From Klebsormidium nitens (lineage: Eukaryota; Plantae; Klebsormidiophyceae), in contig DF237072.1 of the NCBI GenBank assembly GCA_000708835.1, positions 62,001 through 126,000 of the forward strand: 64,000 bases of DNA. Direction: 5' to 3'. The notes under the pieces are model-generated. The model saw only the letters and a program-made list of their open reading frames with translations, was not told the DNA's origin and made no database searches. Position 1 is the stretch's first letter. Every line of letters starts with the position of its first letter. Made by a program: the position numbers and the translations under genes. Shown piece after piece: positions 6,415 through 63,925 of this stretch.

Positions 6415-9400
6415 CTAAAGCCCGTTGACCCGCGTTACTAACAAGCGAAGCTCCTCCGCAGCCCTCTCTTCTCCCGCCTCTCTACAGCGTTTCGCCAACT
6501 CGTCCCATAACCCACTTTCGGCTCTCGGTTGTGCTAGAACCAACGCCTCGAAGACGAGCGGGATGCTCCACGACTCAAATAGCTCAGCCCGAATTGCGGG
6601 CCCGTCGGAACTACTCTTTAGCCCAAGCTTGCCGCTTGCTAAGCTGAGGGCGACGTTTCCAGGGGTGCACCGCAAAAGGTGCTCTAGAGCGGCAACTAAT
6701 TCTTGTACTCTTTCCGGCGAAACCTCACCCCCGCGTCCGTTGAGGAGGCTTTTGATCTCCGGCAGCCATGCGGAAATGACGTGGTTCACCAAAGAGTAGT
6801 CCCAGGCGGTCTTGTTCCACCAAGCGTGACGGAGTTGCTCTCTCAAGCCCTCGCTCGTGACGTCATCCCAAGGGGGCGCCAAAGGGCGCAGCTCGAGGGC
6901 GGGCCACCGAGCCCCCCCCGAGCCACGTGGCAAGAGTGACGTCAGCGCGGCCAGCGCGACGTCCGAGGTGACGTCAGCCGCGAATGTCGCGCGCTGCTCC
7001 GCGACGAGCCGGACGTGTTCGCGCGACTGCGCGAGCGCTTCCAGCGACTTCGCCAACTCGTTGGCTTGAAGTTGGTCGCCTTCGAGAGACGCCTTTAGAG
7101 CGCAACAGCAGAGAGCCTCCACGCAGTCTTTCGGCGACCCGTGTAGCGTCCGCTGCAGAAACCGCAACGCGGCTTCGTCTGATGTCCACTCTCGCAGCAG
7201 CTCGGCGCATCTCAGAACCGCTAGGTACTGGTCGCCCTCCGCTTCCGTTGCTGATTCCGTTCCGTTGAGCGATTCCGCTATGGGGAGCAAGCTCTTGAGC
7301 GCCTCGCTGACCTCCCCGTCGCTCTTCTTTTCCGGACGTCCGTTTTGGCCGCTCACGGGCGTTGTCCGCAATAGCATCGTTGCGCGCCTGTATGCCAAGT
7401 CCGTATGCCCCGGGTAAACTTCTAACAGCTGGTCACACACCGCGAGCGCCTGGTCAACCCCCAATATGAGCCCCGTGACAGATACGCTATGGCTCGCCAA
7501 AGATTGGAGACCCAGCCGCCACGCGTGCGTCGCTTCCTCAGACCCGCCCTTGCTTTCGCTCGCTCTGAAACTAAATTCGTTGGCTGCGATTTGAAAGACG
7601 TGTAAAACGGCCACCTCTGACCCCCGGATGAGTTCAAGCCTAGACTGGTCAAGCCACGTTTCTTCTGGAGACACCAAGACTTGCGCGAAGCCGAGCCTAG
7701 AGGAGGTGCAGTTCGGTAAGACTCCGTATGCTAGCAAATGCGCGCAACTAACCCACAGCACGACACTATCCGAGGGGGTTAGGCCACTCAGAAACACACG
7801 CCCGGCGTTTTCTACTTGTGTTTCGTGCGACGGCGCATCTGCGGTTGCTTGCGCGAGCAATGATTGGACTTCGGCGATAACCGCTTGATGGTCGCCTGAT
7901 TCTGAATGGAGGTGCGGTTGTCGGAGAGTGAGGTCTAACAGGGCTGCGCTAAGGTTAACAGGGTCGCTGTCCTCCTTAACCCGCGTGGTTAAGGAGGAGG
8001 TTATGCTAGAACACGCGCGCTGGCAGATGCGAAGCTTGCCTTCGAGAGTGGTTCGAGTGTTGAGGTAGAAGACCCACAGCGCGTAAGAGCTAGGGTTGAA
8101 GCGGACCTACACGGAGGCAGAAACGGTGTACCAAGCTCTCACTAACTACAGGAAAGAGCAAAATCAAGCAACCAACTTGAGAGATTCGCAGATTCTGCAC
8201 ACGCAGCACGTAGACCAGATTGGTTGTTGACAAGCAAGTCCTTCCAGAGGAACTTTCAGAAGTCATCAGCGCGCAAACGAAAGATAAGAAGCAGACCAAG
8301 CAGCTTTGGGCAACTGAAAGACAACAAGGCGGGTTTGCTCTGCAATAGACACGCTGACCTATCCCATGGAAGTGAATCGAAACTGCCAATCGAAGGACCT
8401 CAAACGAACAACGGCTTCCGAGACAGCAACGGATGCACTCTTCCAAAATACGGACTACGTCAAAATGGGAACGCCTTTGCATGCTCGAATCAGTGTTTCG
8501 AGGGGTCATGATGCTCGACCAACAACACAAAGCAAGACGCAACAGACCGGTCCGATAGATGGGCCCAGCGATCCCACTCCTGCTTCTTGATGTCTACGGC
8601 TTGCGAAAACTTGGCGACGCACTTCCGGGACCAATTAACGCCTTTGAATAGATTGACTCTGTGTCTTGCAGCCGTGACGCTGGAGTTACAAAACTAGACG
8701 GACTCTCAGAAAGCAGATCGCTCAGGGAAGAGTACACTTACTGCTGCCTCGCTTTTTTTCTCCGGCTCGCAAATGAACGAGCAACACACTTTTCAGAAAG
8801 CGCATGCGCTTAACGCACGACTTGCACAGTTGTGCGTCGGAAAGACCACCATTGACTTCCACCCAGAACGGACAGAGTTCTCCAAGATAGCGACGGAACC
8901 CTAAAGAGCAAATAAATTAAAAGGAAAAGGCCAGGCGAGCTCACTGCTGCCTCCATCATCTCCACAGCTTCTTGGTCGTCCTTGGCCCTCCGTATGAAGA
9001 GCTCCAGATACACGGCCCAGAGACAGGGCACCTGCCGGTTCCCCTCGAGGGCGCGGGCTAAAATCGCCAGCGCCTGTGGGAATAAGTAAACAACAAAATA
9101 AATGAAAAACAATGGTACACCATGGGCAGATAGCACATTCCATGCTGTCATCAATAACGACGTTCAGTAACGCAAATTTAGCCAAGGCTAACAGGTCAGT
9201 CCATGAGTAACGCCCACCGGTTTTGCAGGCAAAACGATTGATATTCTTTCAAAGCGGAATCTGATGGGTGTTTAAGGAGGCATAAGCAGATGCATCCGCA
9301 TTTTGGCGCCTCCTCTACTGGACTCTTTTTGTACCCGTCGCTCCACGATCTGGTATTGACTTTCGCGTAACAAGCATACATAACATGAATAGATTCACCT

Positions 9401-12400: not shown

Positions 12401-15400
12401 ATCGGCAGTAAGAGCCTGCAAAAAAGGGGAGGCGGTAACTTAGCAATCTGGAAAACGTGCACTACTGGCAGTTGAACAATGGCCTGAGGATATTTCGCAG
12501 CACTTTGCCTGCTGACGTTAAAGAAATGAAAGTCACAAAGGGAAGTATGAGGGTCCTGGTCGGAGCCGCAGAACCAGTCCTGTCGGAATCTTGAGAGACA
12601 CACAAGAGTCAGTATTGCCAACGACAACGGACAAATTCAGATACACATGCACGGATTAGTGCGGCTTTGACGTCAATTTCCTTCAGTCCTCACAATACGC
12701 CTGCTGATAACCCTCTTTTCAAGGAAGCTGGCGCTCCTCGGTATCCATCATCAGAAAGCCCAACTAGCCTGGCTATTAGCAGAGCCACAGTATTCAGGAT
12801 GGATTGCGTAACCGGGCTAGAAAGCTCACGGGAGATCAATGTCATAATAACTTGGCCGTTTAAGCAGTAATCGGAACCGGCATATCCATGTCGCCAGGAC
12901 ATGTTGTGTCTGCAGTCACCTTCGGCTTTGGACCACAAGCTCTCAAATGCACTCAGTTCTGACTCAGTGAGTAGCGCTTTCAATCCCAAAGAATTAGTCA
13001 CGAGCTTTGCCAAACTCTTCGTAGCCCACTTACTGGATCGTTCCGCGCGGTCGTCTCCTTCGCAGCCAACCCGTTTTCACCATCCGCCTCACTCGGCCCC
13101 TCCTTCTCCTCCCCTCTCAACCTCTTCGGCAGATGGCCGTCCGCCTCCACCCGATACCGAACCGGCGCTTTCCCGTCACTCTCAGGGGGACGTTTTCTCC
13201 CTACTTCTTGCCCCCCTGCACGAGCCCCTTTCTCTGCTACTTGGCCCAAGCGTGCGCCGCTCTCTGCCGCTGGTTGTGCGGACTCCACGAAAACGTGCAT
13301 TCCCGCTGCAATTGCTTGGACTCTTAGACCTTCCGCTCCCCCTTGGCTCCCTCCTTCCCGCTCCCCCTTCCGCGCCTCCGAGCTCGATACGACTAAAAAC
13401 GCGGAACCTTCCGGCGACTCCCCTCCGATAGGCTGAGGCAAATCCGTCCCGGCCAAGTCTACCGGGCTCTCCATCAGTCCCTTGCTAAGTCCTCCCTTCT
13501 GCCCGGGGGCACCTGCACCAGGGGCTTGCTCGCCGACACGGTCTGGCGCACCGACGTCTCGACCCCCCCGCAGATCCGCACTCGAACTACGCCTCTCAGT
13601 GGCTCCTTCTCCGTGCGCTGTCTCCCCGGAGATTGCCCCCCCGGGCGCTTTTCGGCCGTCCGCGATGTCTCTTTCGAACTCCGGCACTGAGGCCACGGTA
13701 ACTGGATCCCCAACCGCTAGCCCCCCCGGAACTTCACGCTGCTTCGTCTCACCAGCACCGCTTGGCAAAGCTGCATACGTTCCCGCAGCCTCTGGAGATG
13801 CATGCCTTCGGGCCGCTCCGTGCGCTCCCCGCCTATCGGCAGTCAGCTCCTTGACTGAAACAATTGCCCCCCGAGATGCCGCCCCCTCGTCCCTGGAAAC
13901 CACTTCTGAAACACCACCTGAGACGCCTGCCTTTTCTGGCAATCCGCTAACGTGATTGGCCGGTTCTGCGCGCGGCTCGCGCTCTTCCAGCTGGCTCACC
14001 ACATACCCCCCTTCATGCTCCTCATGCGTCCAGACTGCACCGTCCCCCCCAGTTGCGATTCCGGGACCCGCGCCCGAGGCGGCCACCACTAAAACCTCAG
14101 CTAACCCCTCTGCTAACCCCTCTCTCGCCTCCACTGCCTGCCGCACACCATCCTCGATCCGCAAACCACCATTTCCTGCACCTAACCTCTTCTCTTGTGC
14201 ATCCGTCCCGCCATCTCGTTGCCCCCTCCCACGCACCTGCCGCAGCCGCTTCTCCATCCTGTCCCGCAGTTCGAGCTCCACCCGTAGCCGCCGGTTCGCC
14301 TCCAACTTCTCCCGCATCACCAGAACCCTCTCCCTCGCTTCCCGCTCGGCCTTCTCTGCCTCGGAAAGGGCCCTCTGCAACTCTTCCCGATTCCTCCCCC
14401 ACTCCGCCGCCTCCGCCTCCCCCTCCCGCAGCCCTGCCCAGCAGCGCTCCTCTTCTTGGGCCAGCGCCGCCAGCTGGCGCTCCGCTGACGTCGCACCCGG
14501 CTCCGCTGACGTCACCCCGAGCTCGAGCGGCACCAACGCACCGGCGGCTGCTGACAGCTCCGCTGGAACGGGGGCCAAGGTTTTGGGCACAGATGGAGCG
14601 GGCTCGCCAGAAGTAATTCCCTGAGGGGTAGAGATAGGCTTCGAAGGGGACCTGGGTCCCAACGGAGCTGCGGTTGCGCCGTCGGGTGCTGCCTGCAGAG
14701 CGACCCCAGTAAGCTCCTTTTCTAGCTTTGGCTGCTTGAGCGGGGGGCGGGAGACGTCAGCAGGGGAGGCTTTCCGTTTTGGGGGGCTGGCTCGGCCAGA
14801 TTCTGCAGCGCCTTTCCCTTCGAGAGGCTCTTTGAGAGGGGCCGGAACATTGGCGGACCTCAGTTCCTTCATTCCCGTCTGTGACATCAGCGTGGTGCTT
14901 GGTTTGGCTGCAGGAACTGCGACTGGGCCTTGAGGCTCGTCTGGCTTGTGTTTGGACTTAGGATTGGGATTCCCCCTCTCCAATTCCACCATGCCGACTC
15001 CTGTCCGGGACCCATCGTCCACACCTTGACCCTTTTGCGGTAGCACAGTCTGTTTCTTCTGGGGAGCCCGCGGCAAAGATTCTGACCCCTTCTCACCCAC
15101 ACCACCTTTGCTGGAGTTCGACACTCCAACTACTGTTTTAGGGGATACCACCCCGCCTGGCGCAGCCTTCACTTCCCCTAACCGAGCGAACACTCCCGGT
15201 GCCCCACCTCCAGTTGCAACTTTTTGGGGACTCCCCCCGGCCGGCCGCTTGTTCTCTTCCTTGACCCCAACAGGTTGCGCGACCGCTTTCCGTTTCTGGC
15301 CGACTGGGGGGGTTGCGGGCCGTCCCCCCTTGCTCGTTTGCTTCATTTCCTGCTCCATTGACGCCACCTTTCTCCGCATCTCCTCAAGAGCTGTCTCGAC

Positions 15401-19196: not shown

Positions 19197-22100
19197 ATCC
19201 CTGTTTCAACAGCGCTGCGAAATTGCAGCATGCAACCGGCGGTCCCTTCAACAGATTCTCCTGTCCTTCGAGGATTTCCCTTGCCCTCTGATCAGATTGC
19301 TGACCCTTCTCGGGAGACAGCAGTTAGCTTCGAGTCTCAGCTTTATGAGGCCGAGCCCCCCAAAACCCCGCTTAACCCGGTCTTAACCCAGTCAACCAGT
19401 CCTAGTGGAGGAACTGGTTTGGCTGAACTCAAGGGGTTTCGTTTGGGTGACGTCGACAACCCCCGGGGAACAGCTGTCAGCTTTGCTGCGGGTTATCAGC
19501 CAGGGGCATCAACACCGGAAGTCAAAACCCGCTCAATACTGTCCGACGTCCCTGCACCCCGGCCCCTAAAACCTCCCCCTGACCAGCTCAAAAGACGGGC
19601 CGACGCTGACCCCCCGGTGCTAAAGGGGTTTCGTTTGACACCGGATGAGGCCCACGCCCGCGACGCCGCGCTGAGCTTCTTCAGAGGCAGCTCCCCAGGG
19701 AGTGAAGAACCGTTGCAATCGCCAGCCTCAAACCCTTCCTTCGGGGGGGGCGTTTCCTCCTTTTCTCACCCCCCCGCAAGTCACGCCTCGGCAGTGGCAC
19801 CGAAGCAAGGGGGTGATGTCGAGTCGCCCGTTCTGAGGGGTTTCCGGCTCCCCGACGGGGGCCCTTCCAGCCCCCCCACTAGAGACGCCGCAGTCAGTTT
19901 CGATGGGCCGCAGTCTCCAGCGGTCATTTCACACCGCCCGTTGCTGCGCCCTGTCACAGAAGACCCCCCCTCCGCCCCCGACGTCGGCCTCTGCATCGTT
20001 CTAACTGCCGACAGTTCCCCAAACCCCAGCCTCGGGAACTCCTTCAACAGTCCCAAAACCATAAGCCCTGGAAACACTAGCCCGGCTGGTCGGTCAATCA
20101 TCAGCCGGGGAGAGGGGCTCGGCGGCCTGCCCAAGGGCCGGCTGACGTGGAATGATGTCATCAATGGGGCTTCTGAAGAGAATGCAGGGACGGGCAAGGG
20201 GTTAGGCGAAGCAGGTGCCACTGAAGCGGCAGATGCAGATTGCGGAGAGGAGTCTGATGACGTCAGCGATGGACAAGAGGAACCGGAGGGCGTAGTGTTC
20301 AAGCGGGTTGTGGCGGAGGGGGATGATGTCACCCTAGGTGCGGGGGCGCGCAAGGGCGAAGATGATGACGTCAGCACGGCCGAGGTGGGGTCAACGTCAG
20401 AGAGCCGTATGGGAAGAAATGACGTGAAGCTGACCTTAGATGTCGAAAAGGGAGGTTTCAAAGGAGTGGTTGCATCCGGTCAAAGGATGGGAGCGGAGCA
20501 AGGGCAGGGGATGAAGGGAGGGGGAAGCGACACAAAAGAGGACGGAACGGCACAGCTTCAAGGGAAGTCTGCAGCAGCGTCGGGGAGCCCATCCGGTCCC
20601 GTAGAAAGAAGCGTGGAGTCGCTTGAAGAAGATTGGCACGGGGAAGGGGAGGCTGAAACGGAGGCGGCAAGGGGCAGCGGATCGAGATATAAGGTCACAG
20701 GGAACGCTTGGACCGGGATGGATCTGAACGGAACGGATTGGGGCAGACCGGAACCGACGGGAGTGCAACGGACTACCGGTGGGAAGCGGCCGGACGCGCA
20801 GCCGCAGAAGGAGTGGGCGGACTCCCATGAGGACGTCAACGAGCCGGTCATCTCAGCTGCACGGGCGTTCAGTCCGAAGCAGAAGGCGCCAGTTTTAGGG
20901 TCACCTTTTCGGGCCGAGGGCCTGCGTTCCGGGGGGGATGTGTCGAGGTCACCCAGCTTCGAAAGGCTGCCGAGCTTTTCGGACAGGGAGGGGTCCGAAG
21001 TCGTGTCCGCAGCGAAGGCGTTCAGCCCGAAAGGGGGGGGTAAGACCAGGCTGGGGAGTACGGAAAAGTCGGCCACTCAGGACGAGGAGGAGACGGGGGC
21101 GAAGAACGGGCGGCAGAGTGTCGATGGTCGGGGGCACAACGCGCACGGGTCTGCAGAGTTCGAGCATATTGCTGAACATGTTTCAGCTGCCAGCTTGGAA
21201 GCATCCGGAGATAGTGCTGGAGCTGTGACTTCATCGCGGGTGACGTCAGCGGAGGTTGCCGGTGATGTCAGCGGGGAAACGGGGGGGCAAGGCCACGGGA
21301 GAGAGCCAGGAAGTGGGGTTGTGAAGCCGGGGGCCAAGGGCGGGACGGCCAAAGAGGTGCCAAGCAAGCGGGTGCTCAAGGAAATCGTCTGGGAAGGAAA
21401 CGGGAGCGAAGTTTCGCATGAGGAGGGAAAGGGAGTTCGTGAACCTGTCGCGGCGACTGGAACGGCTCTGCCGGGGAGCGAGCCTGGCTCCAAGCAGAAG
21501 GCGGCCCCTCCAGCAATGGAGCCAAAACCTGCGGTCAAAGAACCCGGTGAAACACCCCGGCCGAAGCCTCGGCGGCGCAAACCAGAGGGGAACGGCCCGG
21601 TTGTTGGCAACCGGGACTCGGGATCACCAGACGGGTTGACTCTTCTCGCTGCTCAGTACGAGGATTCGCCTCCTCGGAAGGTCCCTCCTTCAGAGCCATC
21701 TCAAGCATCTCGGCCTCAGCAAGAACATGTCTTCAGACCAGCGGGAGATGCAGTCAGGGGCGTGGATAGAATTAGAGAAGGGGGGCGGATCTTGAGTCCG
21801 GAAAGCGGCGCCCGTATTCCGAAAACGGTCCACTCGGGCGCAAACCCCCCTGTCAAACGGAGTCAGCCTAAACCCCGGTCAGAAGAAGTCTGGAGCGAGG
21901 ACGGGGGATGGACTGGAAACACTATGGACGCTCCTTCGAGTCCGGACACGCTTCCAACGGGTACGAACTCCCCTAAGAAGCAGACTCAACCGAGGCCCCG
22001 GGTTTTAGAGTCTGCTCCAGGATCCCCACTTAAAGCCGGAGAGTCTCCGAGAGCGCCTCGGAAACCGGCGCCCAAACCCTCAAACTCCGCCAGCGAGCCC

Positions 22101-25100
22101 CCGCCAACGGCTTCCTTGAGCACAGGGGGGCAAACCAAGCAGCAAACCGCACCCCCCCCTGCAAAGCGTCCAGCCAGACCCCCTGGTTCGGAGGACGGAG
22201 CACCCGGTTCAAACAGGCCTGGTCTCGGAGAAATAGGGGGTTTCGAAAACACGGTGACCCTCCGCCCGGTAAAGACCAGTCGCCCCGACTCCAGCGGCCA
22301 AGATATACCCCGTACTCAACCCTTGAGCCCAGCCCCTTCAAGCAGTCCTTCTCATGTGGGTATGTTCCCTGGTTTGAACGCTGCTGCGCGACAATCGGCC
22401 CGAAACACTCCGGACGATTCGGACCATCTCAGAATGCCGGAGCTTTCGGTCAGCCCCCGCGTCGCGCCTGCCAATCGCCCAAAGCCTCACCCCGTCCCCG
22501 GTGCAGGAAGCACTCCCCGGGCTGCGCCACGTGGCAGCCACGTGGCTCCACATCCGCCGCCGTCGGACCCACCCCGGGCTTCGAATGCTGCCCCCGGAAG
22601 CGTGCCACGTGGCAGCCACGTGGTTTCGAACCTCCCTGCAGGTTCTGACACCCCCCGGTCTTGTGACGCTCCGATGACAGACCCGTACCTCCTTTCCGAG
22701 CCCTACAAGCCCAGCACGTTCGGGGCCCCTGCCCGTCCCACTTCGGGGGGGCGCCCGCTCACTGCAGAACGCCCCCCCAGCGCGGACACGGCCAGCCGGT
22801 ACACGTATAGTGAACGGCCAATCAGTGCGGAGCGGTGGGTGGCGCCATCAGAGTCTGAAACCCTAACCCATCCTCCAAACCCGCCTGAGAACCTGCCGGG
22901 CAATCACGCGCGCTCTTTCCCGCCCGAGTTGGCGCACGTCCTTCCATTCCCCTTCTCTGGAGTGCCGCCCATGTTGGGACACGTGGCAGCACCTCACTGG
23001 CCGCTGGCGCTGGGGCCGGACAGTCAGTTTGTTAGGTCGTCGAGTGAGGGTTTTGGTGCAGTAGCCTCGCTTAACCGGAATGGGTTATTCCCCTTCCTGG
23101 ATCCCTACCAACAGCTGCAAGCGCAGTTGATGCAGCAGTACCCCGGGATTAGCTTCCCCCCGCCCGGTTTGGGGAACCCGTACGGAAGCCCGTTGACTAA
23201 ACCCGAAAACCCTCTGCCCGCGCACGCGTATACGCCCAGCCTTTCGCACCTGCCCGCCCCGTCTCAAGAGTTTCCACACCCACAGAGTCAGCCCCAAACC
23301 GGTTTGACCCAAACCCCTTTTGCGCACCTCCAAAGCAACGCACATCCATTTGGTTCGTTCCCTAACCCCGGGCTCCAGTATCCCCCCTTTTCCCACCCCT
23401 ACTTTCCGTATGGCATCCCTCCTCCTTTCTACTCCCCCCCTCCTTCTGTCTTCCCCTTCGCTTCTGCATCCGGGCCACTCAGTCAGGGTTCTGAAGCGGG
23501 GACTTCGCAGGGGGGTCCAATTGCCGGCAGTTTTGTCCCCCCTCCGGAGCCCAGGTCTGCAAGCCGGGAGGGGTTGGACAGGAGCGCGTCTGCCCGAAGC
23601 GAGCTTCTGAAGGCTAGGGACACCGCAATCCAGGTACGTTCTTAAGTTCAAGTGGGTTTCAGCTTCAGGTTCTTCTTGTGCACGTATGATTTCGATTATT
23701 TTGAATCAGAACCGAGACCTTGTAACCTGGTCCGGATGTCTCCCCTTAAACGTTCTCATCTAAGAGTCAGCCGTGTGTCCTTCACCTAATGTTGTGTGAT
23801 CCAATTTCTGTCAGAGGGTTTTGTGGGCGGGTTCTCTAGGTCTCGCCTTCATTCTTGTTCGTTTGTTTGTTAGCATGTGCATCGTACTCTAGGGCTGATC
23901 CTGGTCCTCCGGATGACAAATTTGACGTTCGGAAACATTACTTGGACGCTGCGACATGAGCCGGGGCTGATCAACAGTCTGAGATTAGAAACTCAGGATC
24001 GTGTTACAGACCTTCTTTGCTACGAAAGTTTTGTGGAGCCCTCCTTGCTATTCCTTTTTGCTCACAAGGGCTTGTGTATTCATGCAGAGGGCGCAACAAC
24101 GGGCTTCCAGAAAAGAAGCATTGGTTCCTCCTCAACCTGTGACCAAACCCCCCGAACCAAAGGCACCCCCCCCGCCAGATCTGAACCCTCTGAAACCCGC
24201 AAGTTCGGACCCCACAGGAAGAGCAAGATCCTTAGCAGGCTCCGCACCTCGCAAAACTTCCATAACCCAGAACCCCAAACCCCTGGGTCCTTCAAAAGTG
24301 GTACGGTCCCTAGAGTCGACGTCAGCGAAACAGCAACCACGGGTTGTCGTTGGCTCTGACGTCGTCCCTCCTGTGGCTGCCCCGTCATCCAGACGTCAGC
24401 AAGCGCCTAACCTCCACACCAACCCCCTCACAAACCCTCCCGTCAACCCCTCCACAAACCCTCAGCATAACCGGCTGCCAAACCCGGCTCCAAACCCTCC
24501 TCATATACCGGGGCACCCCCTCCATGCGGCGTCGGAAACCCTCCCCTCATACGACGACTTCCTAGAGTTTCTCCGCTTCCGGTCGGCTCTTGCGGCCCAA
24601 GCACCAGGCGCGCTGACGTCAGCATCCGCGCTCGCCGCCGCCTTCTCTCCTGCTGCCCCCCACCCCGGCTCGCTAATGGAGGGTATGCAAGGGTCAGCTA
24701 ACCCGTTCGGAGGTGCGCTGACGTCAGCAGTCCCGAACGCCCGTCCGCCAGCAGGTCTCCCCGTACTCCCAAGCGGGGCGTCTCGGAAAGCAGCCCAGGC
24801 TGGGCTGCTGACGTCAGCAACGGCTCGGGGGCGCGCCGCCGCTGACCACCAAAAGCTCGCATCGGCCGCTCGCACGATCCAAACGCTATGGCGGGAGCAT
24901 AAGCTGTTGAAGCGGGAGCGGCGCCTCCGGGAGGCCCCCGAGCGGCGGGCCGGGATGCTGCTGACGTGGCGCTTCCGGGCGCGCTTTTTGCACTTGAGAA
25001 GGGTCGCCGTTTTCCTACAGTCCCTCCGCAGGGGAGTGCTCTCGCGCCGGCGCTTCTGGGCGACACGAAAAGCGGTTCGGATCATTCAGAGCGGCTGGAA

Positions 25101-28100
25101 GCTCTTCCGGGCCTCACTCAGCGGATGGCAGCGGGGGAAGCTTAGAGAGTTGCGGGACTTCTATCGTTACGTGAGGGAGAACCTGGAGGTGGTGGGGTTG
25201 GAAGCGCCGTCGTTTCGAAGCTTTGCGCGGCTGATGGAGAGACTGATGGCCGCCACGGAAGGGGCGCGTGTGCGGCGTCGATTGCGGGGCCGGAAGGCGA
25301 TCGCACTTGTCAGTGAGATGCGGGTGAGAGAATTGGCATCTTCCTGACGTTTTCCCTTCTCGTCTTTCCCTTATTTTTTCCCCTTTTTCTTTGTGGGAAT
25401 ATACTCTTGCGCGGCGAAGGCGATGGCATCCGTCAGGGCGAAGCGGGTGAGAGATCTGGCAATCTCTTGCCGTCCTGACAATATTTTGTCTTCTCGTCTT
25501 TCTGTGTCTCGTCCATTCTCTCTTTCCGTTCATGTTTCCCCCTTCCTGCTTCCTGCACTCGTCGTAGCTGCAATTGTTTTCATGACTTCATCACGAGTCT
25601 TGTCTAATTACGAGGATTTGGATCTGGCAGTTCAGCCTTAAACACTTAACTGAAATAGCTGCGTCGTGCGAAAAGTTTCTACGTTCGGGCAGATGCACTC
25701 GTGTCTTACTGAACACAAGTGTCCATATCTCCATCTTCGTGTGCGGAACAGTCGGCTTCGAATGAAATGGTCTATATGAGTACCTTTCTGTTTCTCTTTT
25801 CTGCATGTAAACCGGCTAAGACCAGGGTTCTCAGGTTTCGTCGCAGCTAGACAATCAGGAAAATGCATGCCCCTTGGATACTCTTTCTTCAACTGCACTT
25901 ACTCAGCTGATTCAGTTTATCCGGTCAGTCCAGCAGCACGCTATTTGCCATCCTTTGAGGTTTCCAGTGCTGCCAAAACCTGCGCTTTCCTACAATATGC
26001 AATTCCGTGGCCCTCCAATCCAGTCCAAGGTTGTCAAAGAAGGTCGTGTTTGAACCCGTGTGTGCAGGATATACGGGACCTCTTGCGGCAACTAGAGGTG
26101 GAGAAAGCGCGGGGCGGTGCCACGCCCGACCGCCAGCTGGAAAAGACGCTCCGTGTGCAGCTCCGCCAGAAGCACGTCCTGCTCGAGAGAGCCGCGCACA
26201 CCCCTCTCCTCTCTAGTTCCCCGTCCAATGTGAATACGCCCCTCTCATCCCCGCACCCGAGCTCAGCTGGGTTTGGACGCAACCAAAGGGGATTTGGACG
26301 CAACGGAAGGGGGTTCGGACCGGATCAAAGCGGCTCCGGACGCGATCTAGCGAGAGTCGGACGGACTTCGGTGGAACCCGGGCGGAATTCGGGCGGCTTT
26401 GGACGGAATCCGGAGGGGCTCGGACGCGACCAAAGCGTTCCAGACGCACTGCGCGCGTGGGCGTCCGGATCCGTCGGCGGACATCCAGAAGAGCGGCGCC
26501 GGTCCTTGTTCGAAAACGGCAGCGGCAACGGACGGGCTCCCAGGAGCACTTTCGAGAAAAACGAGGCGCTGGCCGCCGCTTATGCAGAAAACTCCCGCTC
26601 TAGTTTTGCGAGCAGCGCAAACCCTAGCCGCGCCTTTTCACACCAGGGCGGGGCGACGCGAGCACGCGCACCGGTGGCGGAGAGCAACCGGATCTCCTTC
26701 CGGGGGGCTTCGATTGGCTTTGGAAATATACCCCCGGCAGTGGCAACAAGCCGGCCAACGGATCGGACAGGACGTGGACGGGCTTTTGTAGCCGACGAAA
26801 GTGCGGCGGGCATGTTCGGACAGTTTGCCGGGCCCGTGTTTCGGACTTTCGACGAGGGGCTGAGCTTATCTCCGGTCAGGGTGAATTCTCCGCCGGCTAG
26901 AAGCAGGGCTACAACAGCGGAACAGGCGGACGAAAGTCTGCGGGAGACAAGACCTGGCGCGGCGCAGGATGCTACAAAACGGGGCCAAAGGAAAAGCGTT
27001 AGGAGTGACGAGGAGGGTTGGATTGAGTTCGAGGACGTTCCATATGAGTCGGAGTCAGACGGCATGCCAGACGCAGTCGAGTTCAACCGTCATTCACTTC
27101 CGCTGAACGAAGATCGTTTCACGGATAACCGGCCAGGTCCAAGGAGACAGGGAAGGGGAGCCTACGACGTGGAAGACTTGGCTCGGGCCAGTGCGAGCGC
27201 GCACCGCCATCTACCAGCTGACGGGAGCCAAGCGGCTGCCTCCCGGCAAAACGGGTCAAGCGCTAGCCGTGGGACAGCAGTGCGGCTCCCAAACCGGGTT
27301 AGCTATGACGACATCCCGATAACCGCCTCCGCCACGCCGCGCCCCCACCCGGACTTGCACGTGGACGTTCCCAGTCGCTCCAACCCCCCCTCGCAAAACC
27401 CGTCTCCTTCCGAGAATCCCGGAAGGGGTCCCGCCAAGCGCCCGTTCCTACGCGCTCGCTCCGGACGCCTCGGGACGAGCTTCACGATACCGGACCACCT
27501 CAAACTGTCCGTCAACGAGACGCCACGTGGCGCGTCTGGGGACGTGCCAAGTGGCACCACCGGGGACGCGCCAGGTGGCGGCGCCGGCCCTGCTTTAGAT
27601 TCTGCGGAGCTCGGGCCGAGCACTGCGCCAGGAAATCTGGGACGGTCGTTGTTTGCGGACGGGCATAGGGTCAAGAGGAGGGTTAAGCGTAACCCGCTCG
27701 AGGGAGAGATTTCGATCTTGGAGAGAGATGAGGAAGGGGAAGAGAGCGAGGAGCCGCCGAAACGGGCGTTCCTGCAGCGGAAGTCGAAGGCGATGCCAAT
27801 GCAGAAGCTGGATTGGTCGAAGGTAGGTGCCGGGAGTTGAGTTGTGTCTGGTGTGGTTTTGTTGCACAGTTGCTCCCACGGGCAATAAGGTACACGCTCG
27901 CTTGAAAATATGCCTTCAACACGCTGCAAACTTTCTTGTTAGCAACCGGAATATTTTCCCCCAGGAATTGCTTAATGGTGACCCAATAGAGCAGATCAAC
28001 AAAGGTAGGTAGCGGAGTTTGAGAATGGGGCCTGTTGAAGAATGTCCAGCACCTGCAGAGCAATGCGTAGTAACTCGTTTGCAGCCAGCCTCAAACTCGC

Positions 28101-41676: not shown

Positions 41677-44600
41677 ATGGAGGCCAGGAACCGACCAGCG
41701 GTGGTTATTGACAATGGAACAGGGTAAGTCTTATGTGTTTTTCACAGAGTTGTGCAAGTGCGGCTGGCAAGACATTCTGCCTATTTGTGGTGGTAGGTGT
41801 TGGTCTGGTGTTTTGTGCTTTTTAAACAGGCTCGCATGGATGTTTAAGTTATTTTGTTGGAGTTGGCAGTATAACCCCCTACTTCTCTTGGCTGATCATG
41901 CCAAGTCAATTTACCGGGTCCTGAGTAGATAGCAATCTAGATTAGGCAGGAAAGTAGCCAAAAGTAATCGGTTGTTTCCCGCCCTTGAGTGTGCGAATCG
42001 CAACTTGGAGGGGGGCCTGATGTAGTTTTGGAACAGCTAGGGACTGATCGTATGTCACCAGGAGCAGTTGCAGATTCAATTGTTCAGAGCACTACCTAAC
42101 TCGAATTGACCCACTTTGTATGTGCAATCACAGCGTGCGTGCAGTAGGAAGGTTTGAGTCCTTAATAAATAACGAGGGGGATATTTTTAGTACTGTCTTC
42201 GCAGTCTTGAGGACTCCGCTGGCAACTGTTTCCTTCTAGAGGCCTGCAGACGACAAGCCCTCCTACAGCTGAGGGCTGGGTCTTTTGATGTTGGTGGTGC
42301 TAAGCAAGGGGGACAGGTATATGGGGCACTTTACTGAAGCAGAGTCAAAAGCTGACTACAATCTGCTCTGATCACTGGCTATCTACATGGCACATGTTTA
42401 CGATGTCTTGTTGCAGGTTTCTTATTTCGATCATGGTTTCGATTGTGGATCGGTGCAGGCTACATATTGACTTTGTACATGTTGAGTGTGACACGTTATT
42501 GTTTGCCACTTATTTTGTTGCACTTTGGCACAGGTACACAAAGATGGGGTTCGCAGGCAACGTGGAGCCGGCCTTTATAATTCCAACAGTTGTGGCCACT
42601 AATGAGACATACGTTAAGTCGGGGGGAAGTGTGACGTCAGCGCAGCACAGCGCTGGCGTCATGGCGGATCTGGACTTCTACATCGGTGATGAGGCAACGC
42701 CCCGAGCGAGCTCGTATAACATAAACTACCCCATCAGGCATGGGCAGGTGAGGAACCTTTTCCACAGATCCTAGAACAGCTGAAAGTTTCAACGGCCGGG
42801 TGAATGCCTTTTGTTGATGGAAGGCATGGGAATCTTGTCCATGTTCCATTGAAGGTGCACTTCTGGTTATTTTCTTCTCTGACTTGACCCTTGGGGCGTT
42901 GCTTCTTCTTTGAGCAGGACAAGGCACTGAATCGAATAAATAGAGGAGCGAGATATTGGGCGAAAAGGTATCTCAAAAGCTTATGGATCGTTGGAGTAAC
43001 CGCTTCTCAAAAGAGTTGGACCCCAAGAGTTGCTTTTACACAAAGTGCAGAAGTGTTGTTTTCCGAAGCCCACCTTCTACGCGGGGACTAATGCTATTGT
43101 GAGAGAGTTTTCGATCCGCCGCGGAAAGATCAACGATCTTCGTCGACATCAACGATATCGCACTTGATGCATTTCACTTTGCAGCATTCTGTCATCATTT
43201 GACGGAGCTAAGAAGGCTGTTCCTTCATGTGTCTGCAAATGACGTCAGCATGACAGCAGTGCAGAATGATAGGCCGCTGTTATTACCTTTCCAGGTAGAC
43301 AACTGGGACTCCATGGAGCGCTTCTGGCAGCAGTGCATCTTCAACTACCTGCGCTGCGACCCGGAAGACCACTTCTTCTTACTGACCGAAAGCCCGCTTA
43401 CCCCCCCCGAAAACCGAGAATACATGGCCGAGATCATGTTCGAAACGTTCAACGTGCCGGGACTGTACATAGCAGTGCAAGCAGTGCTGGCGCTAGCGGC
43501 CAGCGACACGAGCGGAAAGGTGACATTCTTTCTTCGTTCCTTTTGGCATCGTCAGCAGGAGAGATTGCGGGACGTTAAAAGCGAGCGGCATCCTGAGAAT
43601 TTCCGAAAGCACTGAGGTTACAATGTTTGGAAATGGCGTGTGCGAGGCGACTTGAAGGCGGAAGGACAATGTTGAGAGGACCGATGATGTTGGTGGCGTG
43701 CGATTTCAACAAGTTTCATTTCATACTTCAATTCAGCGAAGCTGTCCTTAGCCGATAACATGTTGGAGACGTTCAGATTGCCAAGGCTGTTCAAAGTAGT
43801 CCAGGTGTTGTACTCTGACGCTTGATCAGACCATAGGAAGATTCTGTTTTCGGGCGGAAGACAAGGTCAGGCTTCGTCAGGCCGTACTTAACTCTCAAAG
43901 CGGCAGGCCCAGTCGTGAACCAGTGATCCTGTGACACGTGTTTCGTCTGTTCGAAGTCTGTCTGGGGACGCTATGGGAGATGCGTCGACCATGTAACTCT
44001 CTCTCGCAGAGCCACTTTATCAACCCGGCCGCCGATCTCCGAACGGGAAGGATCAACCACCCACTTAAAAGCCGCTCCACCATCTTGAAAGTCACGCAGA
44101 TCCATATACCTAGTTCTCTATGTGTCTTCAGGCACCGCTTCCCGTCATCTTGCTGAACTGCCAGCTCAACTAACCAGCTTTCCTGTCTGCTCCGTTTCAG
44201 ATGGAGCTAACGGGTACGGTCATCGACAGCGGCGATGGCGTCACCCACGTGGTTCCGGTGGTGGATGGGTACGTCATCGGCAGCAGCATCAAGTCAATAC
44301 CAATTGCCGGAAGGTGGGCATCCCTGGTGCCCGTATCATTGATTCATACGTATCCCCAAGGTTGAACCTTCTCGTTGCTCAATTCTGACCGTGAGTCGGA
44401 AATCACATGCTTGCAAAACGCTTTCCAGGTCCGGTTATGGGACCCCTTTAACATTCCGCCGTTCTGTATTGTTGGCTCTGTTCCATCTTCCAACCTGCAG
44501 ACGCCACGTGCCTCTACCTGAGCAAAGTCTTCCGAATCCTTGGAATGCTCTCGAAGAGAGACTGTGACTCTCCTGATGCTCTAGTTTTTCTCTCTCCCAA

Positions 44601-47600
44601 AAGTTTGTGAATAGTATGTTGACTGTGTGACACCGACACTTCCCGCTGCTTTGTCTTTCTTACAGTTCAGCACCGAGTGTTTGGCATACGACATCAATGA
44701 AACACTTTTCGCTCCTCCTTTCCAGAGACCTGACGAACTTCGTACAACAACTGATGCGCGATCGAGGGGAGCCAGTTCCGCCGGAGGACTCTTTGGACGC
44801 AGCTCGACGAATAAAAGAACTGTACTCGTACACGTGTGCAGACATCGTGAAGGTACGGCCAGCCAATCAATGCTATAATGGGGCCTGCGGACCAGATAGC
44901 GAAAGTGATGCTTGGAAGACTTTGTCTTTTCGCAATTGAAGAGTCTTGAGAACAGCTCTGCCGAAGCTTTTCTCAGCAATTATCGTAAGGATCTAGGACA
45001 AACGATTAGTGCACTGTCGTAAGGTGGGCTCATCTTCAGGACCAAATTGCTGGAATCGGTATTCAAGTCACCTGGCTCGACGAGAGGTCCCTCGGTTTGA
45101 CGCGATGCACGCGAGCAAGAAATGAAAGGAGCTTCGACATCCTCGTGCTCAGACCCTCCTAATGAGGTACATTCTCAATCGACGATCTGATCAGGCCATT
45201 GCTGACAGTATGACCTTTGTTTGCATTCGAGACAACCCAGAATAAATTGACCCTCTTTCCGTATCCTCTGTTGCAAACCGCTGCATGCTGTCGCTCTTCC
45301 GCCTATGCAGGAACACACCAAGCCCGCGCAAAAGCTCTACAACTTTATCAAACGTTTCAACCCGTCTTGACCACGGGAAGCACGCCACCCTTTTCTCCTC
45401 GCGGGCTGTTGCCAACGATCGTATCCAAGCCACTGCTGACGTGTCAATATTGCAGGAGTACGTGAAACACGACAAGGAGCCTTCCAAGTATATAAAGCAA
45501 TGGACGGGGCTCAACAGCCGGACGCGGCAGCCGTACTCTGTGGACGTGGGCTACGAGCGGTTCCTGGCTCCCGAGGTCGGTTTTTCGCTGAATTTCTGAC
45601 GTCACCCGTGTCTCAAACCTTATTTCGCTCGAGTCTTATAAGTTGCTCTCTTCTGAACACCCGGTATGTGTCCGAGGCCGCCTGGCTCCCGAGGTTTGTT
45701 TCGCCTCTGGTTTTTTCACTCCGACTCAGAGATTGGACGTCACCTGTGTCCCGAGACATATTTGGTCCGAGTGTTCATGACTTGCTCTCTTCTGAACACC
45801 CCAAATATGTGTGACGTCGCCTGGCTCTCAAGGTTTGTTTTCGCTTCTGGTTTCATCGACCTGCTCTCGTCTGAACACCCCAGTTTGTGCGACGTTGCCT
45901 GGTTTCCGAGGTCCTCTTTCTTCTGGGCTTTACTGTGGATCCGGGATATATCTAAAGGCACCTAGCTCCCCTCGTAAAGTAGTGCACCGCAATTCACTCC
46001 AGGCCCGGCGTGTGCAACGACCGATTTTTTCTGACATGGAACAGTGGAACGAGGCTTGAGTCGCTTCTTTGTCGTTTTGAACTGGTTTTTACTTCGAACC
46101 TGATATCTTCCTGACGTCACCAAGATGCCAGAGAATGGTTTGGCCTTTGGTTCTCTTACCCTTCTTATACCCGCAACTCCAACCACTTCTTTTGTCATCT
46201 GGCTCCCCGGATTGTCTCGCTTCTGGTTTACTTGACCTGCTTTTGTCTTGGAACCCTCTTTGTCTTGACGTCATCTGGCTTCCGGGCTATAATTTGCTCT
46301 CTGATCTTATGGACATAAAGCTCGAAAAGAACTGCAGTCGGTGGTGTGGTGTTCAATTCTGCGTCACTGCATCTACCGCACATATGTGGACTCTTGTCAG
46401 CGAGAAGGCGATGATGTGACCCGTTGACGACGATTCGTGCCAGGAAATGCTTGTACGCTTGACGCCTTGCGATTGAGCACGTATCTGCCTACTTTCAAAA
46501 CCTATAAGTAGTTCATCCTGACTCGAGATTCTGACATTCTCCATGATCCACATTGGAACACGCATGGGGAACGTAAGGCTTCTCAAGTCGTGTGACAAGG
46601 TGTGTGATGGAAGAGTATGTAAAGCTCTCGTCCCGCGGCGCATTGGCTTTGCGGATCAAGCCAGACATTTTTCAGATCTGACTTCTAAACCGTATGCATT
46701 TGAGATTTTGAGTTCTCCGTTTCGCTTGAAGCAAGTGTCCCATCGTCGAGGACGTGCAACACGCGAGCCCGTTTACAAGGTTGTGAACCGGTTCCCTTCG
46801 GAATGTTCTCTGGGTCGTCAGTCCCGTATGGAAGGGACAATCCTGATTAGAAGCCCTCTCTATCTAACCGTCCGCTTGTGTCTGACTTAGGTGGTCAATC
46901 GATCAGTCGCTCAATTGAGCAAACGCTCAATCAGTGTCCTCGGTCTGCCCCCACAAGTATTGAGGCGGCGATGTAATCCATCGATGCTTTCTTGCTTGAA
47001 ACCACGACGTAAGTGCTTGGACACGTCTTGGCATGTAGGTTATACTTCACTATCAGCGTCCAAGACTTCAATACCCCGAGGTCGCTCGTGACTTGTTTTC
47101 TGCAAACTCGTTCTGAGTTGTTGATGTCAAGGATGTTTGGAGCTCTTCGCGGGCAGTGCGCTTGTAAGGACATTCGGAAAGTCCTGTACGAACACCTCAG
47201 TGTGGCAAGGACGACAGTAAGCTCTGGCAGTGTGGTGCCAGTCTCCATTGCCAGGATCTGTATGCCTCGATGTGCGTTAGGGTGTCACATCAGCAAGTTG
47301 TGGAGTCCGGCAATCTTGCTCAAAAACCCCTGTTAAAGGGTACGATTCTGCTTACCTTGCTGATGCCGCACACTTCTTTCGGCTCAGTATTTGCAAGTTC
47401 TTGAAACGACTGATCACCCCTTTTTTGCGCATTTCTTAAAAAGCCCAGCGAGGGTCTTTTGCACCAATTCGGAAGGCATCTGCCTTATCCCCAAATGCTT
47501 TGTCCTCGTCCAGCTATTCATGTTTTTCTATTGAATGCTAGTTTCTTTGGTCGCACTTTCCTCACTTTCCTCATCCCGTCATATCAGATTCATCTTCATT

Positions 47601-57535: not shown

Positions 57536-57826
57536 CGTCTCCCTAGCAGATCTGAACAAAAATACTTCGCCAGCTGTAAGACCGCGGCAGCCTGAGACGC
57601 TGCCCTAAACCTCTCAACTAAGCGTCGGCGTCGCGGGCCCCAGGGCGAGCACGCGGCCGGCCAAGTGCGGCCCGCGCGGCCGCCAATCCCCAAAAGGTTG
57701 ATTGGGCGACACGTCGCAGTGATGCTTGGCTTTTCGACAGCGGTATGATTGAACAAAGTCAGGACATCGACGTCACAAACAAGCCCTGACATCAGAATCA
57801 ACTGGAGATCCTTCGTGGCTGCTGAG

Positions 57827-58819
57827 ATGGGGTTGGCGCGTCTGACCTTGGTAGAGCTCCCAAGCGAAATGCTTCTGATCATCCTGAGTAAGCTGGCGCT
57901 CCAAGATCTGCATTCCTTTATGCGGGTCACCAGAACTTGCAAGACCTTTCATGCCAAGGCAGCGCACGATCTGAGTCTCTGGAGGACTGCCTTTCACGCC
58001 CCTTCAGCCGCGGCAAAAGGACTGATCCAGTTTCAAAACGGAAATGCTTGCAAAGAAGAGCTTGCGAGCTTAGACGCGAACGTTGAAGCATTGGGCGGCT
58101 ATAAGCGCTTTGTAGCAGCACGTTGGAGGGATACGGACAGTCCAGAAGTTGAACAAAACGCTTCGAAACAAAGAGCATCAGAACAAAGCCCAGCTCGTTC
58201 GACAGCCCCTGATTCCGGCGTCTGCTCTCGTTCCGAAAAGCCTTCTCAGAAGGGGGTGATAGAAACTGTTCTTATCCTGGTCAGGTTTCATGAAAGCCCT
58301 GTGGCTTTCGGGACTTATGCTCCTTGTACCGACAAAGAACATTTCAAAGTCGACGGACAGTTCTTTTGGCATAGCGACGCGAAACTCCCAAGTAATCTGG
58401 TGTGCATCGATCTTCAGTCGCTGATTCCAATCGCCGAAATGAGAGCGGCAATTGAGCGGGAGGCCTGGAGGGCAGGTCATGACGTCAGCCCGTCACATCA
58501 CTACCTTTTCGCGGGCACCATTCTTTGCACTGAAGTGTACGCTCTCACAAAAAAGAGCGGTAACGAAGGCGGTTCTGAAGTAGGTGAAAATGCGCTTCGG
58601 TATGGAAGATTCTCCATACATAGAGCAGAGGTTAGCAGTCATCCGTGGGGGCTCATTGTCTCTCAGATTGGCAATGTCATCTTCAACGAGAGCAGTTCCG
58701 ACGATGTTTTCTCAAATGCTCGTGAAGACTCTAGGGCTGTCTTGGATTTTGAAACTCCGGGCAGATCGGAGTGGGCATTCTTCATGGCGGGAGATTTGAT
58801 GGGTTTGGAAGAGGACTGA
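57827..58819 (+). CDS. Intronless F-box-like protein of an uncharacterised family, 330 aa
   Basis: First ATG at 57827 within the ORF listed as 57749-58819. N-terminal LVELPSEMLLIILSKLALQD...CKTF...W is F-box-like, and it shares several blocks with 61083-62099. Confidence 0.75.
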   Translation: MGLARLTLVELPSEMLLIILSKLALQDLHSFMRVTRTCKTFHAKAAHDLSLWRTAFHAPSAAAKGLIQFQNGNACKEELASLDANVEALGGYKRFVAARWRDTDSPEVEQNASKQRASEQSPARSTAPDSGVCSRSEKPSQKGVIETVLILVRFHESPVAFGTYAPCTDKEHFKVDGQFFWHSDAKLPSNLVCIDLQSLIPIAEMRAAIEREAWRAGHDVSPSHHYLFAGTILCTEVYALTKKSGNEGGSEVGENALRYGRFSIHRAEVSSHPWGLIVSQIGNVIFNESSSDDVFSNAREDSRAVLDFETPGRSEWAFFMAGDLMGLEED

Positions 58820-58831
58820 GCTACTGATTTG

Positions 58832-58874
58832 GACAGGAATCATATCGACAGGACTCATATCGACAGGAACCATC
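58832..58874 (+). repeat. 15-bp micro-tandem repeat, about 3 copies
   Basis: GACAGGAATCATATC GACAGGACTCATATC GACAGGAACCATC. Confidence 0.9.
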
Positions 58875-63193: not shown

Positions 63194-63925
63194 TTACATG
63201 TTCTTCGACGCAGCCCCGCGCCCCGTGGCGCGTATTGCGAGCTCCTTTAGAATCAGGCCGTAGCACGACCCGCTTTCTGTCGTCTTATCGTACTGCAGAA
63301 GTTCTTGCACCCGCGCCAGACCGTCCTGGAGAGTGCGCAACCTGCACGAAGGGAATGCAACTGGATCGGCCTACAAGATACGTTGGGCTTTTCCGACCGG
63401 TACCAGACTCGTTGAGATATTCACGTCAAACTCGATCACGCTGCCAGTGTTCGAATTTTCGCGCGATGCAAAACAGGCAAGAATTCAGAAACAATAGGCC
63501 GTGCGCAGGCAAAAAAATTCGAGGGTCTGGCAAGGGCCACCTTCATGCAAGTGGTGGGTGGATCGACCCCGGTTTGAAAAGCGTCAGACCGGCTTTGGGT
63601 TTGCTGGCTTTGAAGGCGGGAAAAAAGTCTCCCAAGAAAGTTTGAAACAATCAAGACGGTAAAAGCCCCCGTGCGCTGCCGTTTCTCTCGGACTGGATCT
63701 AGAACCAGGAGTTTGCTTCCCTTGCTTTTGGCCCTACCTCGCGGGGTCGTCCAGGATCGCCCGGATGACGTCATTCAGGCGGCCCGTGATGTCATCCGTC
63801 TCCAGGTTGACCGTGAACGTGTCGTAGTCCAGCAGTCTGCTCCGCTCGAAGGGCCGGTCGAACGCGCGGAAGAAGCTCACCGGAATGCACCCCATTGAGA
63901 TGGCCTTCCAGAAACGGGCTGTGTC
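63194..63925 (-). CDS. Last two exons of an exostosin-family (GT47) glycosyltransferase; the gene continues beyond the right edge
   Basis: Exons at 63738-63925 and 63194-63341 (phase 2, stop TAA) encode DTARFWKAISMGCIPVSFF...PFERSRLLDYDTFTV...LRTLQDGLARVQELLQY...LILKELAIR, which matches the GT47 C-terminal pattern R-x-x-x-A-I-x-x-GCIPV...PF...LDY. Confidence 0.8.

Follow-up and report, generated by a model that had tools for sequence, protein, structure and literature searches.

The palindromic 8-mer TGACGTCA occurs at 19 exact sites in the 64-kb stretch of algal DNA analyzed here (the window), against an expectation of 0.99–1.17, an excess of ~16-fold. It is the top-ranked 8-mer by count in the window, with a mean spacing of about one site per 3.4 kb. 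All 19 coordinates given in a preliminary description of this DNA were re-found with none extra, and its estimate of about one copy from base composition agreed with dinucleotide shuffles of the window, in which the mean was 0.99 and the maximum was 3. Markov models of orders 0–4 predicted 0.9–2.6 copies and, together with the shuffles, rule out chance or composition as the source of the excess. The excess fell from 16-fold for the exact word to 1.7-fold with one mismatch and 1.0-fold with two mismatches. These results show that it is sharply specific to the exact palindrome.

We also counted the palindrome in two relatives, one close and one distant, taken from Logan SRR23617307 and JGI metagenome 3300060284. 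The syntenic DNA of the close relative contained 7 copies vs 0.43 expected (~16-fold) and the distant relative 11 vs 1.26 expected (~9-fold). In 80 ARP3 loci of other eukaryotes (320 kb), no excess was observed (6 copies vs 4.0), ruling out a general trait of eukaryotic ARP3 loci. A metagenome scan with ARP3 exon 3 returned controls only and no close relative. These results show that the excess is common to the alga and its two relatives but not to the ARP3 loci of other eukaryotes.

The sites occupy 9 separate loci of the window and are clustered ~30–150 bp apart (P ~1e-4); the spacings within clusters (79, 32, 108, 105, 90, and 154) showed no helical or nucleosomal regularity. Outward of the octamer, G was preferred at +1, C at +2, and A or G at +3, giving the extended consensus TGCTGACGTCAGCA. 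As previously described, a GC flank was present on at least one side of 13 of the 19 sites, and the 12-mer GCTGACGTCAGC was present at three (24614, 24719, and 24809). Single copies of the full 14-mer were present in the window and in the distant relative and three copies in the close relative, most sites having one flank or none. All seven CpG-transition variants listed earlier were also found (2787, 14882, 20153, 20324, 21263, 57787, and 63787), with an extra one at 47122. Two of these decayed copies, both TGATGTCA, are aligned with TGACGTCA in the distant relative: 20153..20160 and 20324..20331, the latter being TGAGGTCA in the close relative.

Coding context and codon choice

Coding-like DNA, defined as the long ORFs, the ARP3 exon supported by RNA, and a short exon on the minus strand (63734-63982), contained 13 sites vs 0.27 expected (48-fold), and the remainder of the window contained 6 vs 0.89 (7-fold). 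Seven of the 13 sites are read as xTG-ACG-TCA and six as GAC-GTC. The preliminary description had placed 13 sites in exons of five genes and in both frames; the number and the frames held, but the sites are spread over at least six ORFs or genes. Four further sites (43240, 45597, 46112, and 46266) are intronic in ARP3 according to RNA contig joints.

Codon choice was then evaluated in the long ORFs, which hold 11 sites. Shuffling of codon order gave an expectation of 0.20, and synonymous-codon shuffling with the amino acids kept gave 0.89, with none of 1,000 shuffles reaching 11. Of 29 TS dipeptides, 10 were encoded by ACGTCA, and of 27 DV dipeptides, 13 were encoded by GACGTC. A codon or dipeptide artefact is ruled out by the 11 sites vs 0.89 with amino acids kept. 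In the distant relative, the codon immediately 5' of the ARP3 exonic site 42632 is changed from GTG to ATG, replacing V with M while nTG and the motif are kept. The use of two frames, the presence in introns, and this V-to-M change with retention of the motif indicate that TGACGTCA is not a peptide motif, and the earlier proposal that the pressure acts on DNA rather than protein is borne out. The palindrome is thus a real DNA-level signal that biases codon choice in exons. The excess survives the amino-acid-preserving null, on which the preliminary description had made its proposal depend, and is limited neither to this window nor to a few low-complexity genes, being present at 9 loci here and in two related organisms.

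These data also bear on whether the sites are a by-product of LTSA/DDVS peptides in low-complexity proteins, of local repeats, or of a mobile element family. TS and DV dipeptides are somewhat frequent, and once the amino-acid sequence is taken into account, 0.89 copies are expected instead of 0.20, still far below the 11 sites observed. Three low-complexity ORFs account for nine of the 19 sites, an echo array for three of the intronic sites, and a 21-bp tandem repeat for one; set against this are the two frames, the intronic sites, the V-to-M change, and the orthologous positions of sites in conserved genes. Compared in pairs over 60 nt, the flanks of the sites reached at most 50% identity and averaged 28%, near the random control (24%), and TGTCCAAG, a motif that accompanies repeat families, has 0 or 1 copies in the window. 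The unrelated flanks rule out a repeat family, mobile element, or MITE carrying the palindrome, the sole exception being the intron echo array. A by-product origin is therefore largely refuted in the window, and we consider it extremely improbable.

Sites at orthologous positions and in the ARP3 locus

The sites were compared one by one with the relatives. The minus-strand ORF 6415-7860 contains TGACGTCA at 6858..6865 (DDVT, GAC-GTC frame), which the distant relative lacks at the corresponding position, and TGACGTCAGC at 6937..6944 (LTS frame; not retained in the distant relative) and 6969..6976 (ADVT). A G-box, GCCACGTGGC, is located at 6922-6931, 13 bp upstream of site 6937. The site at 12668..12675 (TGACGTCA) has no convincing ORF and is probably non-coding, and that at 31724..31731 (TGACGTCAGCA) lies in no long ORF. 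In the minus-strand ORF 12998-15730, TGACGTCAGC is read on the minus strand at 14507..14514 (VTS), within a 21-bp tandem repeat whose second copy is TGACGTCG.

The 1484-aa ORF 19191-23645 carries three copies of TGACGTCAGC. The copy at 20258..20265 (DDVS) is conserved in the close relative and, displaced by 3 bp, is TGACGTGG in the distant relative; that at 20366..20373 (DDVS) is TGACATCA in the close relative; and that at 21241..21248 (VTS) is found in the window only, the close relative differing at 7 of the 8 positions. In ORF 24001-25347, all three sites encode LTS. The GCTGACGTCAGC site at 24614..24621 is identical at 8 of 8 bases in the three organisms, the GCTGACGTCAGC site at 24719..24726 is conserved in the close relative and is TGATGTCA in the distant relative, and the 8-mer at 24809..24816, within the full 14-mer at 24806-24819, is kept in all three. 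In the F-box ORF 57749-58819, TGACGTCAGC at 58480..58487 (HDVS) is again present in the window only, the close relative differing at 5 of 8 positions amid 81% identity over 145 aligned columns. The last site, TGACGTCA at 63766..63773 (NDVI), is located in the minus-strand exon-like ORF 63734-63982, with TGATGTCA 21 bp away at 63787.

Retention at orthologous positions exceeded that of control 8-mers: 4 of 7 sites vs 16% (P = 0.015) in one test and 2 of 9 vs 4% (P = 0.05) in a second, or 3 of 10 when site 42632 is counted, each test comprising 7–10 sites. The comparison with sister species suggested in the preliminary description thus gave retention above control words.

In ARP3, whose nearest matches among named hits are land-plant proteins, splicing is evident from GT..AG joints in RNA contigs. 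The plus-strand site 42632..42639 (TGACGTCAGC) lies in exon 2, encodes VTS in a variable loop, and is conserved in the distant relative. RNA contigs of three studies span this site without differences and, together with the presence of the palindrome in other organisms, rule out an assembly artefact. Intron 2 contains TGACGTCAGCA at 43240..43247 (plus strand), ~50 nt before the 3' splice site. The 3.9-kb intron 45576-49438 is built of ~139-bp echo units and contains TGACGTCA on the plus strand at 45597..45604, in the first echo unit and 22 nt into the intron, and at 46112..46119 and 46266..46273. The unit homologous to the first one has GGACGTCA at 45737. The three sites in this array are partly non-independent, as noted before.

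The positions of these intronic sites raise the question of an RNA-level element, a splicing enhancer or RNA-binding-protein site, for which the sense transcript would be read as UGACGUCAGC. Every site of known context lies in transcribed DNA, and one site is 22 nt past a 5' splice site and another ~50 nt before a 3' splice site, but the distance to splice sites is not fixed. Within ARP3, splice-site association was unsupported, with two of four intronic sites and no exonic site near a junction. Among one-sided sites, the AGC extension is on the sense side in 8 and on the other in 2, a bias that is not significant and that codon context can yield. Furthermore, a GC flank on one side is independent of one on the other (double-flanked sites: 3 vs 3.4 expected), and a perfect 8–14 bp palindrome would be pointless for a single-strand reader. 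We regard an RNA-level role as very unlikely.

A possible bZIP-type reader or HIP1-like process

TGACGTCA is the canonical CRE/C-box, for which GCN4 and the plant group D bZIPs have a preference (PMC10163045). The palindrome that ranks second by enrichment in the window is the plant G-box GCCACGTGGC (5 vs 0.06 expected); the G-box word CACGTGGC was found 16 times vs 1.7 expected, 7 of the 16 copies being in one local repeat. A local repeat at 22528..22626, in the coding sequence of the 1484-aa ORF, carries four G-box palindromes (CCACGTGG, three being GCCACGTGGC), which are partly conserved in the close relative. Another GCCACGTGGC, at 27522..27531 in ORF 25867-27840, is conserved in the close relative and is CCAAGTGG in the distant relative. 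The G-box as second palindrome and the tight homotypic clusters favor a bZIP-type reader over a purely HIP1-like reading. We therefore tentatively propose, with somewhat less than even confidence and on the basis of sequence comparison, that TGACGTCA is a selectively retained double-strand element read in gene bodies by a dimeric bZIP-type protein. Under this proposal, the algal lineage would keep TGACGTCA, in its extended form TGCTGACGTCAGCA, in great numbers within genes as a duplex element, and its putative reader would be a dimeric protein of the bZIP class. The sites would probably be intragenic regulatory or chromatin-organizing docking points rather than classical promoter elements, and selection may place them where the codons are tolerated, as in disordered proteins and the variable loop of ARP3.

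The identity of sequence with the CRE/C-box, the palindromic form that suits a dimeric reader, and the co-enriched G-box agree with the bZIP reading. Transcription-factor sites typically tolerate mismatches and sit near promoters; the exact, mostly exonic or intronic sites are unlike these and count against it. Classical CREs lie close to promoters, number few per gene, and tolerate half-sites, whereas here nearly only the exact word is enriched, with 13 of 19 sites in coding-like DNA and four in introns of ARP3, at distances of up to 4.6 kb from its start codon. Also counting against a bZIP reader are the TRE TGASTCA, which was not enriched in the window (4 vs 9 expected, z ~-1.7, not significant alone), and the weak G-box enrichment in the distant relative (3 vs 1.65). 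The retention of sites is not exclusive to the bZIP reading, since a DNA-level attractor process would raise conservation too.

Three known systems are comparable in part. The consensus (+1 G, +2 C, +3 A) gives the same 14-bp palindrome as the CRE-type Maf recognition element (C-MARE), TGCTGACGTCAGCA, with TGC/GCA flanks; here, however, the GC flank is present on just ~40% of half-sites, and to our knowledge Maf proteins are known in animals only. At the M26/CRE meiotic hotspots of fission yeast, a CRE-like word also acts in coding DNA, via a bZIP dimer. Hotspot motifs, however, are expected to vanish by conversion instead of building up. A lineage-specific multiplication of motifs, as seen here, is also found in plant transcription-factor sites multiplied by MITEs (PMC5950925), but the present sites have unrelated flanks and many are at orthologous positions in coding exons.

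The main rival to the bZIP reading is a eukaryotic analogue of HIP1, in which a non-regulatory DNA-level process upholds the palindrome and bZIP binding is incidental. Candidate processes are sequence-specific methylation with biased mismatch repair, biased gene conversion, and a chromosome-structure or self-marking role. HIP1 (GCGATCGC) of cyanobacteria is an over-represented palindromic octamer located inside ORFs in several frames and conserved above control motifs, and its function there is unknown (PMC5861425, PMC4390886). The 16-fold excess falls in the 15–300-fold range of HIP1, whose conservation within ORFs is likewise similar (PMC5861425). Here too, an octamer palindrome is over-represented, its in-ORF excess remains after amino-acid and codon control, and it is retained at orthologous positions in a small sample. 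The very sharp exact-match peak and the spread over exons, introns, unassigned DNA, and both frames are also HIP1-like, and the two lineage-specific sites, which differ at 5–7 of 8 positions amid 75–81% identity, resemble patch-wise writing. However, the density relative to expectation is ~7-fold lower outside coding-like DNA, where a neutral drive should fill unconstrained sequence fastest. The CpG observed/expected ratio of 0.90 leaves hardly any trace of methylation-driven decay, and neither a methyltransferase nor a repair enzyme is tied to TGACGTCA. HIP1 genomes are prokaryotic, with periodic spacing of 10–90 kb and cognate orphan methyltransferases that recognize internal sequences of the palindrome, whereas this eukaryote has spliced genes and a different word, clustered tightly and identical to a canonical transcription-factor site. 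The resemblance to HIP1 raised in the preliminary description thus holds for over-representation and positional conservation; given spliced eukaryotic genes, G-box co-enrichment, and clusters, it is an analogy only. We consider a HIP1-like process possible but rather unlikely. By the same analogy, the palindrome could perhaps, though we doubt it, be a genome-wide, selectively maintained counterpart of HIP1 in the alga and at least two relatives, written into exons at a cost to codon choice and serving a chromosome-level or self-marking role and not gene-by-gene regulation.

Meaning of the palindrome excess

Short palindromes in great excess that prevail over codon choice are known in bacteria (HIP1 and uptake sequences), and full-text searches of the literature yielded no description of one in a eukaryote. 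New here are the excess in the relatives, the orthologous retention, the sharpness of the exact word, the coding-like bias, the clustering, the TGCTGACGTCAGCA consensus, and the CACGTGGC enrichment. Three comparable genomes are now usable for following gain and loss of TGACGTCA, and because the palindrome is the best-known bZIP site, the question is directly testable. If the bZIP reading is true, a transcription-factor family would have taken on the marking of gene bodies, at sites numbering in the tens of thousands; the alternative would be a DNA-level process that mimics a bZIP site.

Abundance and form of the palindrome

An exact pattern search of the window returned 19 copies of the eight-letter CRE/C-box palindrome TGACGTCA, a bZIP site, all of which had been listed in the preliminary description, and no others. 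About one copy had been expected there, in agreement with 100 dinucleotide-preserving shuffles (mean 0.99, maximum 3), and Markov models of orders 0 to 4 predicted 0.9 to 2.6 copies. TGACGTCA was the commonest 8-mer in the window and had the top z-score under the second-order model. The 10-mer TGACGTCAGC was observed 16 times, compared with 0.2 expected. As previously described, GC flanked 13 of the 19 sites on one or both sides, and the 12-mer GCTGACGTCAGC was present at three; the GC flanks on the two sides were independent of each other (3 double-flanked sites vs. 3.4 expected). The bases favoured next to the word were G (+1), C (+2), and A/G (+3), which extended it to a 14-bp palindrome, TGCTGACGTCAGCA, corresponding to the CRE-type Maf recognition element.

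The exact word was enriched 16-fold and the 24 one-mismatch words, when pooled, 1.7-fold (43 vs. 25 expected), and no enrichment of two-mismatch words was observed in the window (251 vs. 249). Every CpG-transition variant reported earlier was found, with an additional copy at 47122, and the observed/expected ratio of CpG was 0.90. The sites were clustered, with 6 of the 18 inter-site gaps at most 160 bp long (P about 1e-4). The partner word of bipartite repeats was not present in the window, and no published report of iterated TGACGTCA in any eukaryote turned up in full-text searches of the literature.

Location of the sites and codon-aware tests

A plus-strand gene with GT..AG introns, whose translation is actin-related protein 3 (ARP3), was defined by RNA contigs (four runs, three studies). 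It contains five sites: site 42632 lies in exon 2 and encodes VTS, in a loop whose sequence and length differ between solved ARP3 structures; site 43240 lies in an intron, ~50 nt upstream of a 3' splice site; and sites 45597, 46112, and 46266 lie in a 3.9-kb intron (45576-49438) seen in the RNA contigs. The RNA contigs over site 42632 showed no difference from the window, ruling out an assembly artefact. The three sites in the long intron are partly non-independent, as had been proposed, because this intron is built of ~139-bp echoes of the preceding exon end. These degenerate tandem units make up most of the intron; those at 45563, 45681, 45820, and 45898 copy the exon end including the 5' splice site, and a 167-bp duplication copies the 3' splice site together with the first part of the following exon (49236-49305 vs. 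49403-49472). Two young units (45777-45840 vs. 45638-45701) are 81% identical, and one contains GACGTC (in TGACGTCG) and the other CCGAGGCC, a patch-like replacement creating a near-motif.

Eleven further sites fell in long GC-rich ORFs and one in a short exon-like ORF on the minus strand; sites 12668 and 31724 had no clear context. Three or four consecutive long GC-rich ORFs (1484, 448, 657, and 243 aa) occupy 19191-29624 on the plus strand, with synteny kept in both relatives described below. The encoded protein is disordered and rich in Pro and Ser, has IQ-like motifs at ~24880-25080, and gave no Pfam match; the ORFs may be exons of a single large gene. F-box genes and F-box-associated LRR genes are clustered at 52789-62099, collinear with locus L001 of the close relative at ~70-74% DNA identity. 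This cluster is nearly devoid of the motif, with a single site among four genes. An ENA metagenome contig with an LRR-gene homologue (L002) has an adjoining reverse-transcriptase ORF (2167-3729).

Based on local composition, 13 sites were found in coding-like DNA compared with 0.27 expected, and 6 in the remaining 46 kb compared with 0.89. Two reading frames were used, as noted earlier, with 7 sites read as xTG-ACG-TCA and 6 as GAC-GTC. Codon nulls were run on eight long ORFs (5,153 codons, 11 sites). The preliminary description had named loss of the excess under a codon- and dipeptide-preserving null as a refutation, but shuffling of synonymous codons with the amino acids kept gave a mean of 0.89 sites (maximum 5), and at least 11 sites in 0 of 1000 shuffles. 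Shuffling of codon order gave 0.20 sites. Thr-Ser was written ACGTCA in 10 of 29 cases (~5% predicted from codon usage) and Asp-Val GACGTC in 13 of 27 (~20% predicted). The enrichment survives these nulls, and therefore the excess acts on DNA, as had been proposed. The 60-nt flanks of the 19 sites were at most 50% identical (mean 28%, vs. 24% in the random control), so that the sites are not repeat or mobile-element copies. Given these two results, an origin as a by-product of peptides or repeats is very improbable.

Relatives, controls, and turnover

Syntenic contigs of other samples were found by protein searches with the window ORFs. Identity in aligned coding DNA was ~75% for a close relative (Logan SRR23617307; loci L001 and L003) and ~60% for a distant relative (JGI metagenome 3300060284), of which 57.6 kb was assembled by contig walking, in addition to a 20.2-kb ARP3 locus. 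TGACGTCA was observed 7 times in 23.5 kb of the close relative (0.43 expected) and 11 times in 77.9 kb of the distant relative (1.26 expected), where it was the top palindromic 8-mer of the 57.6-kb contig. The full 14-mer TGCTGACGTCAGCA had one copy in the window (24806-24819), three in the close relative, and one in the distant relative. By contrast, 80 control ARP3 loci of other metagenomic eukaryotes (320 kb) contained 6 copies of TGACGTCA vs. 4.0 expected, ruling out a general eukaryotic trait or a property of these genes. These results indicate that the excess is a lineage trait. Among named sequences, those matching the ARP3 exon best came from land plants, which suggests a plant-side (streptophyte) alga.

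In aligned orthologous coding DNA, the close relative keeps 4 of 7 window sites, compared with 16% of all 8-mers (P=0.015), and the distant relative 2 of 9, compared with 4% (P=0.05), or 3 of 10 with the ARP3 loop site 42632. At the latter, the preceding codon changes from GTG to ATG in the distant relative, altering the residue and retaining the motif. All three organisms share sites 24614 and 24809 unchanged, amid ~59% identity, and the distant relative has TGATGTCA at site 24719. Conversely, the variants TGATGTCA at 20153 and 20324, described earlier as decayed, are real decayed copies, because the distant relative reads TGACGTCA at both. Turnover was also evident: sites 6858, 6937, 6969, 21241, and 58480 are lineage-specific. 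Compared with the orthologous sequence of the close relative, 21241 differs at 7 of 8 positions and 58480 at 5 of 8, within surroundings 75-81% identical, which would fit patch-wise writing.

Among other words in the window, the plant G-box GCCACGTGGC was the second most enriched palindromic decamer (5 vs. 0.06 expected), and CACGTGGC occurred in 16 copies (1.7 expected), 7 of them within one local coding repeat. The TRE (AP-1/GCN4 site) TGASTCA was, if anything, depleted (4 vs. 9); it stood at 0.3-0.5 of expectation in the window, L001 plus L003, and the JGI contig (total 9 vs. ~21), the opposite of the CRE. At geneA alignment column 4533 (window ~22539; L003), the G-box CCACGTGG of the window is replaced in the close relative by TGACGTAG, a C-box-like word. 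The telobox-like words CCAAACCC and AAACCCT recur in coding DNA at 24419-24510 and elsewhere (14 vs. 2.6 expected), and also head the 8-mer counts of the orthologue in the close relative.

Possible readers of the palindrome

The word is identical to the CRE/C-box preferred by plant group D bZIPs and GCN4 (PMC10163045). This identity, the palindrome of up to 14 bp, the co-enrichment of the G-box, and the homotypic clusters point to a dimeric bZIP-class protein that would read duplex TGACGTCA; an RNA-level element is unlikely. The exonic location and the near absence of tolerated variants count against a bZIP. A non-regulatory DNA process resembling HIP1, the highly iterated palindrome of cyanobacteria, is the alternative with the most substantial chance, though a doubtful one; the excess is weaker outside coding-like DNA, which argues against a simple neutral drive. 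In the reasoning applied to HIP1, retention at orthologous positions argues for selection (PMC5861425), and by the same logic the retention seen here favours selection over continual neutral replenishment. Judged from sequence, it is a tentative reading, somewhat short of an even chance, that TGACGTCA is a selectively kept gene-body element read by a candidate bZIP.
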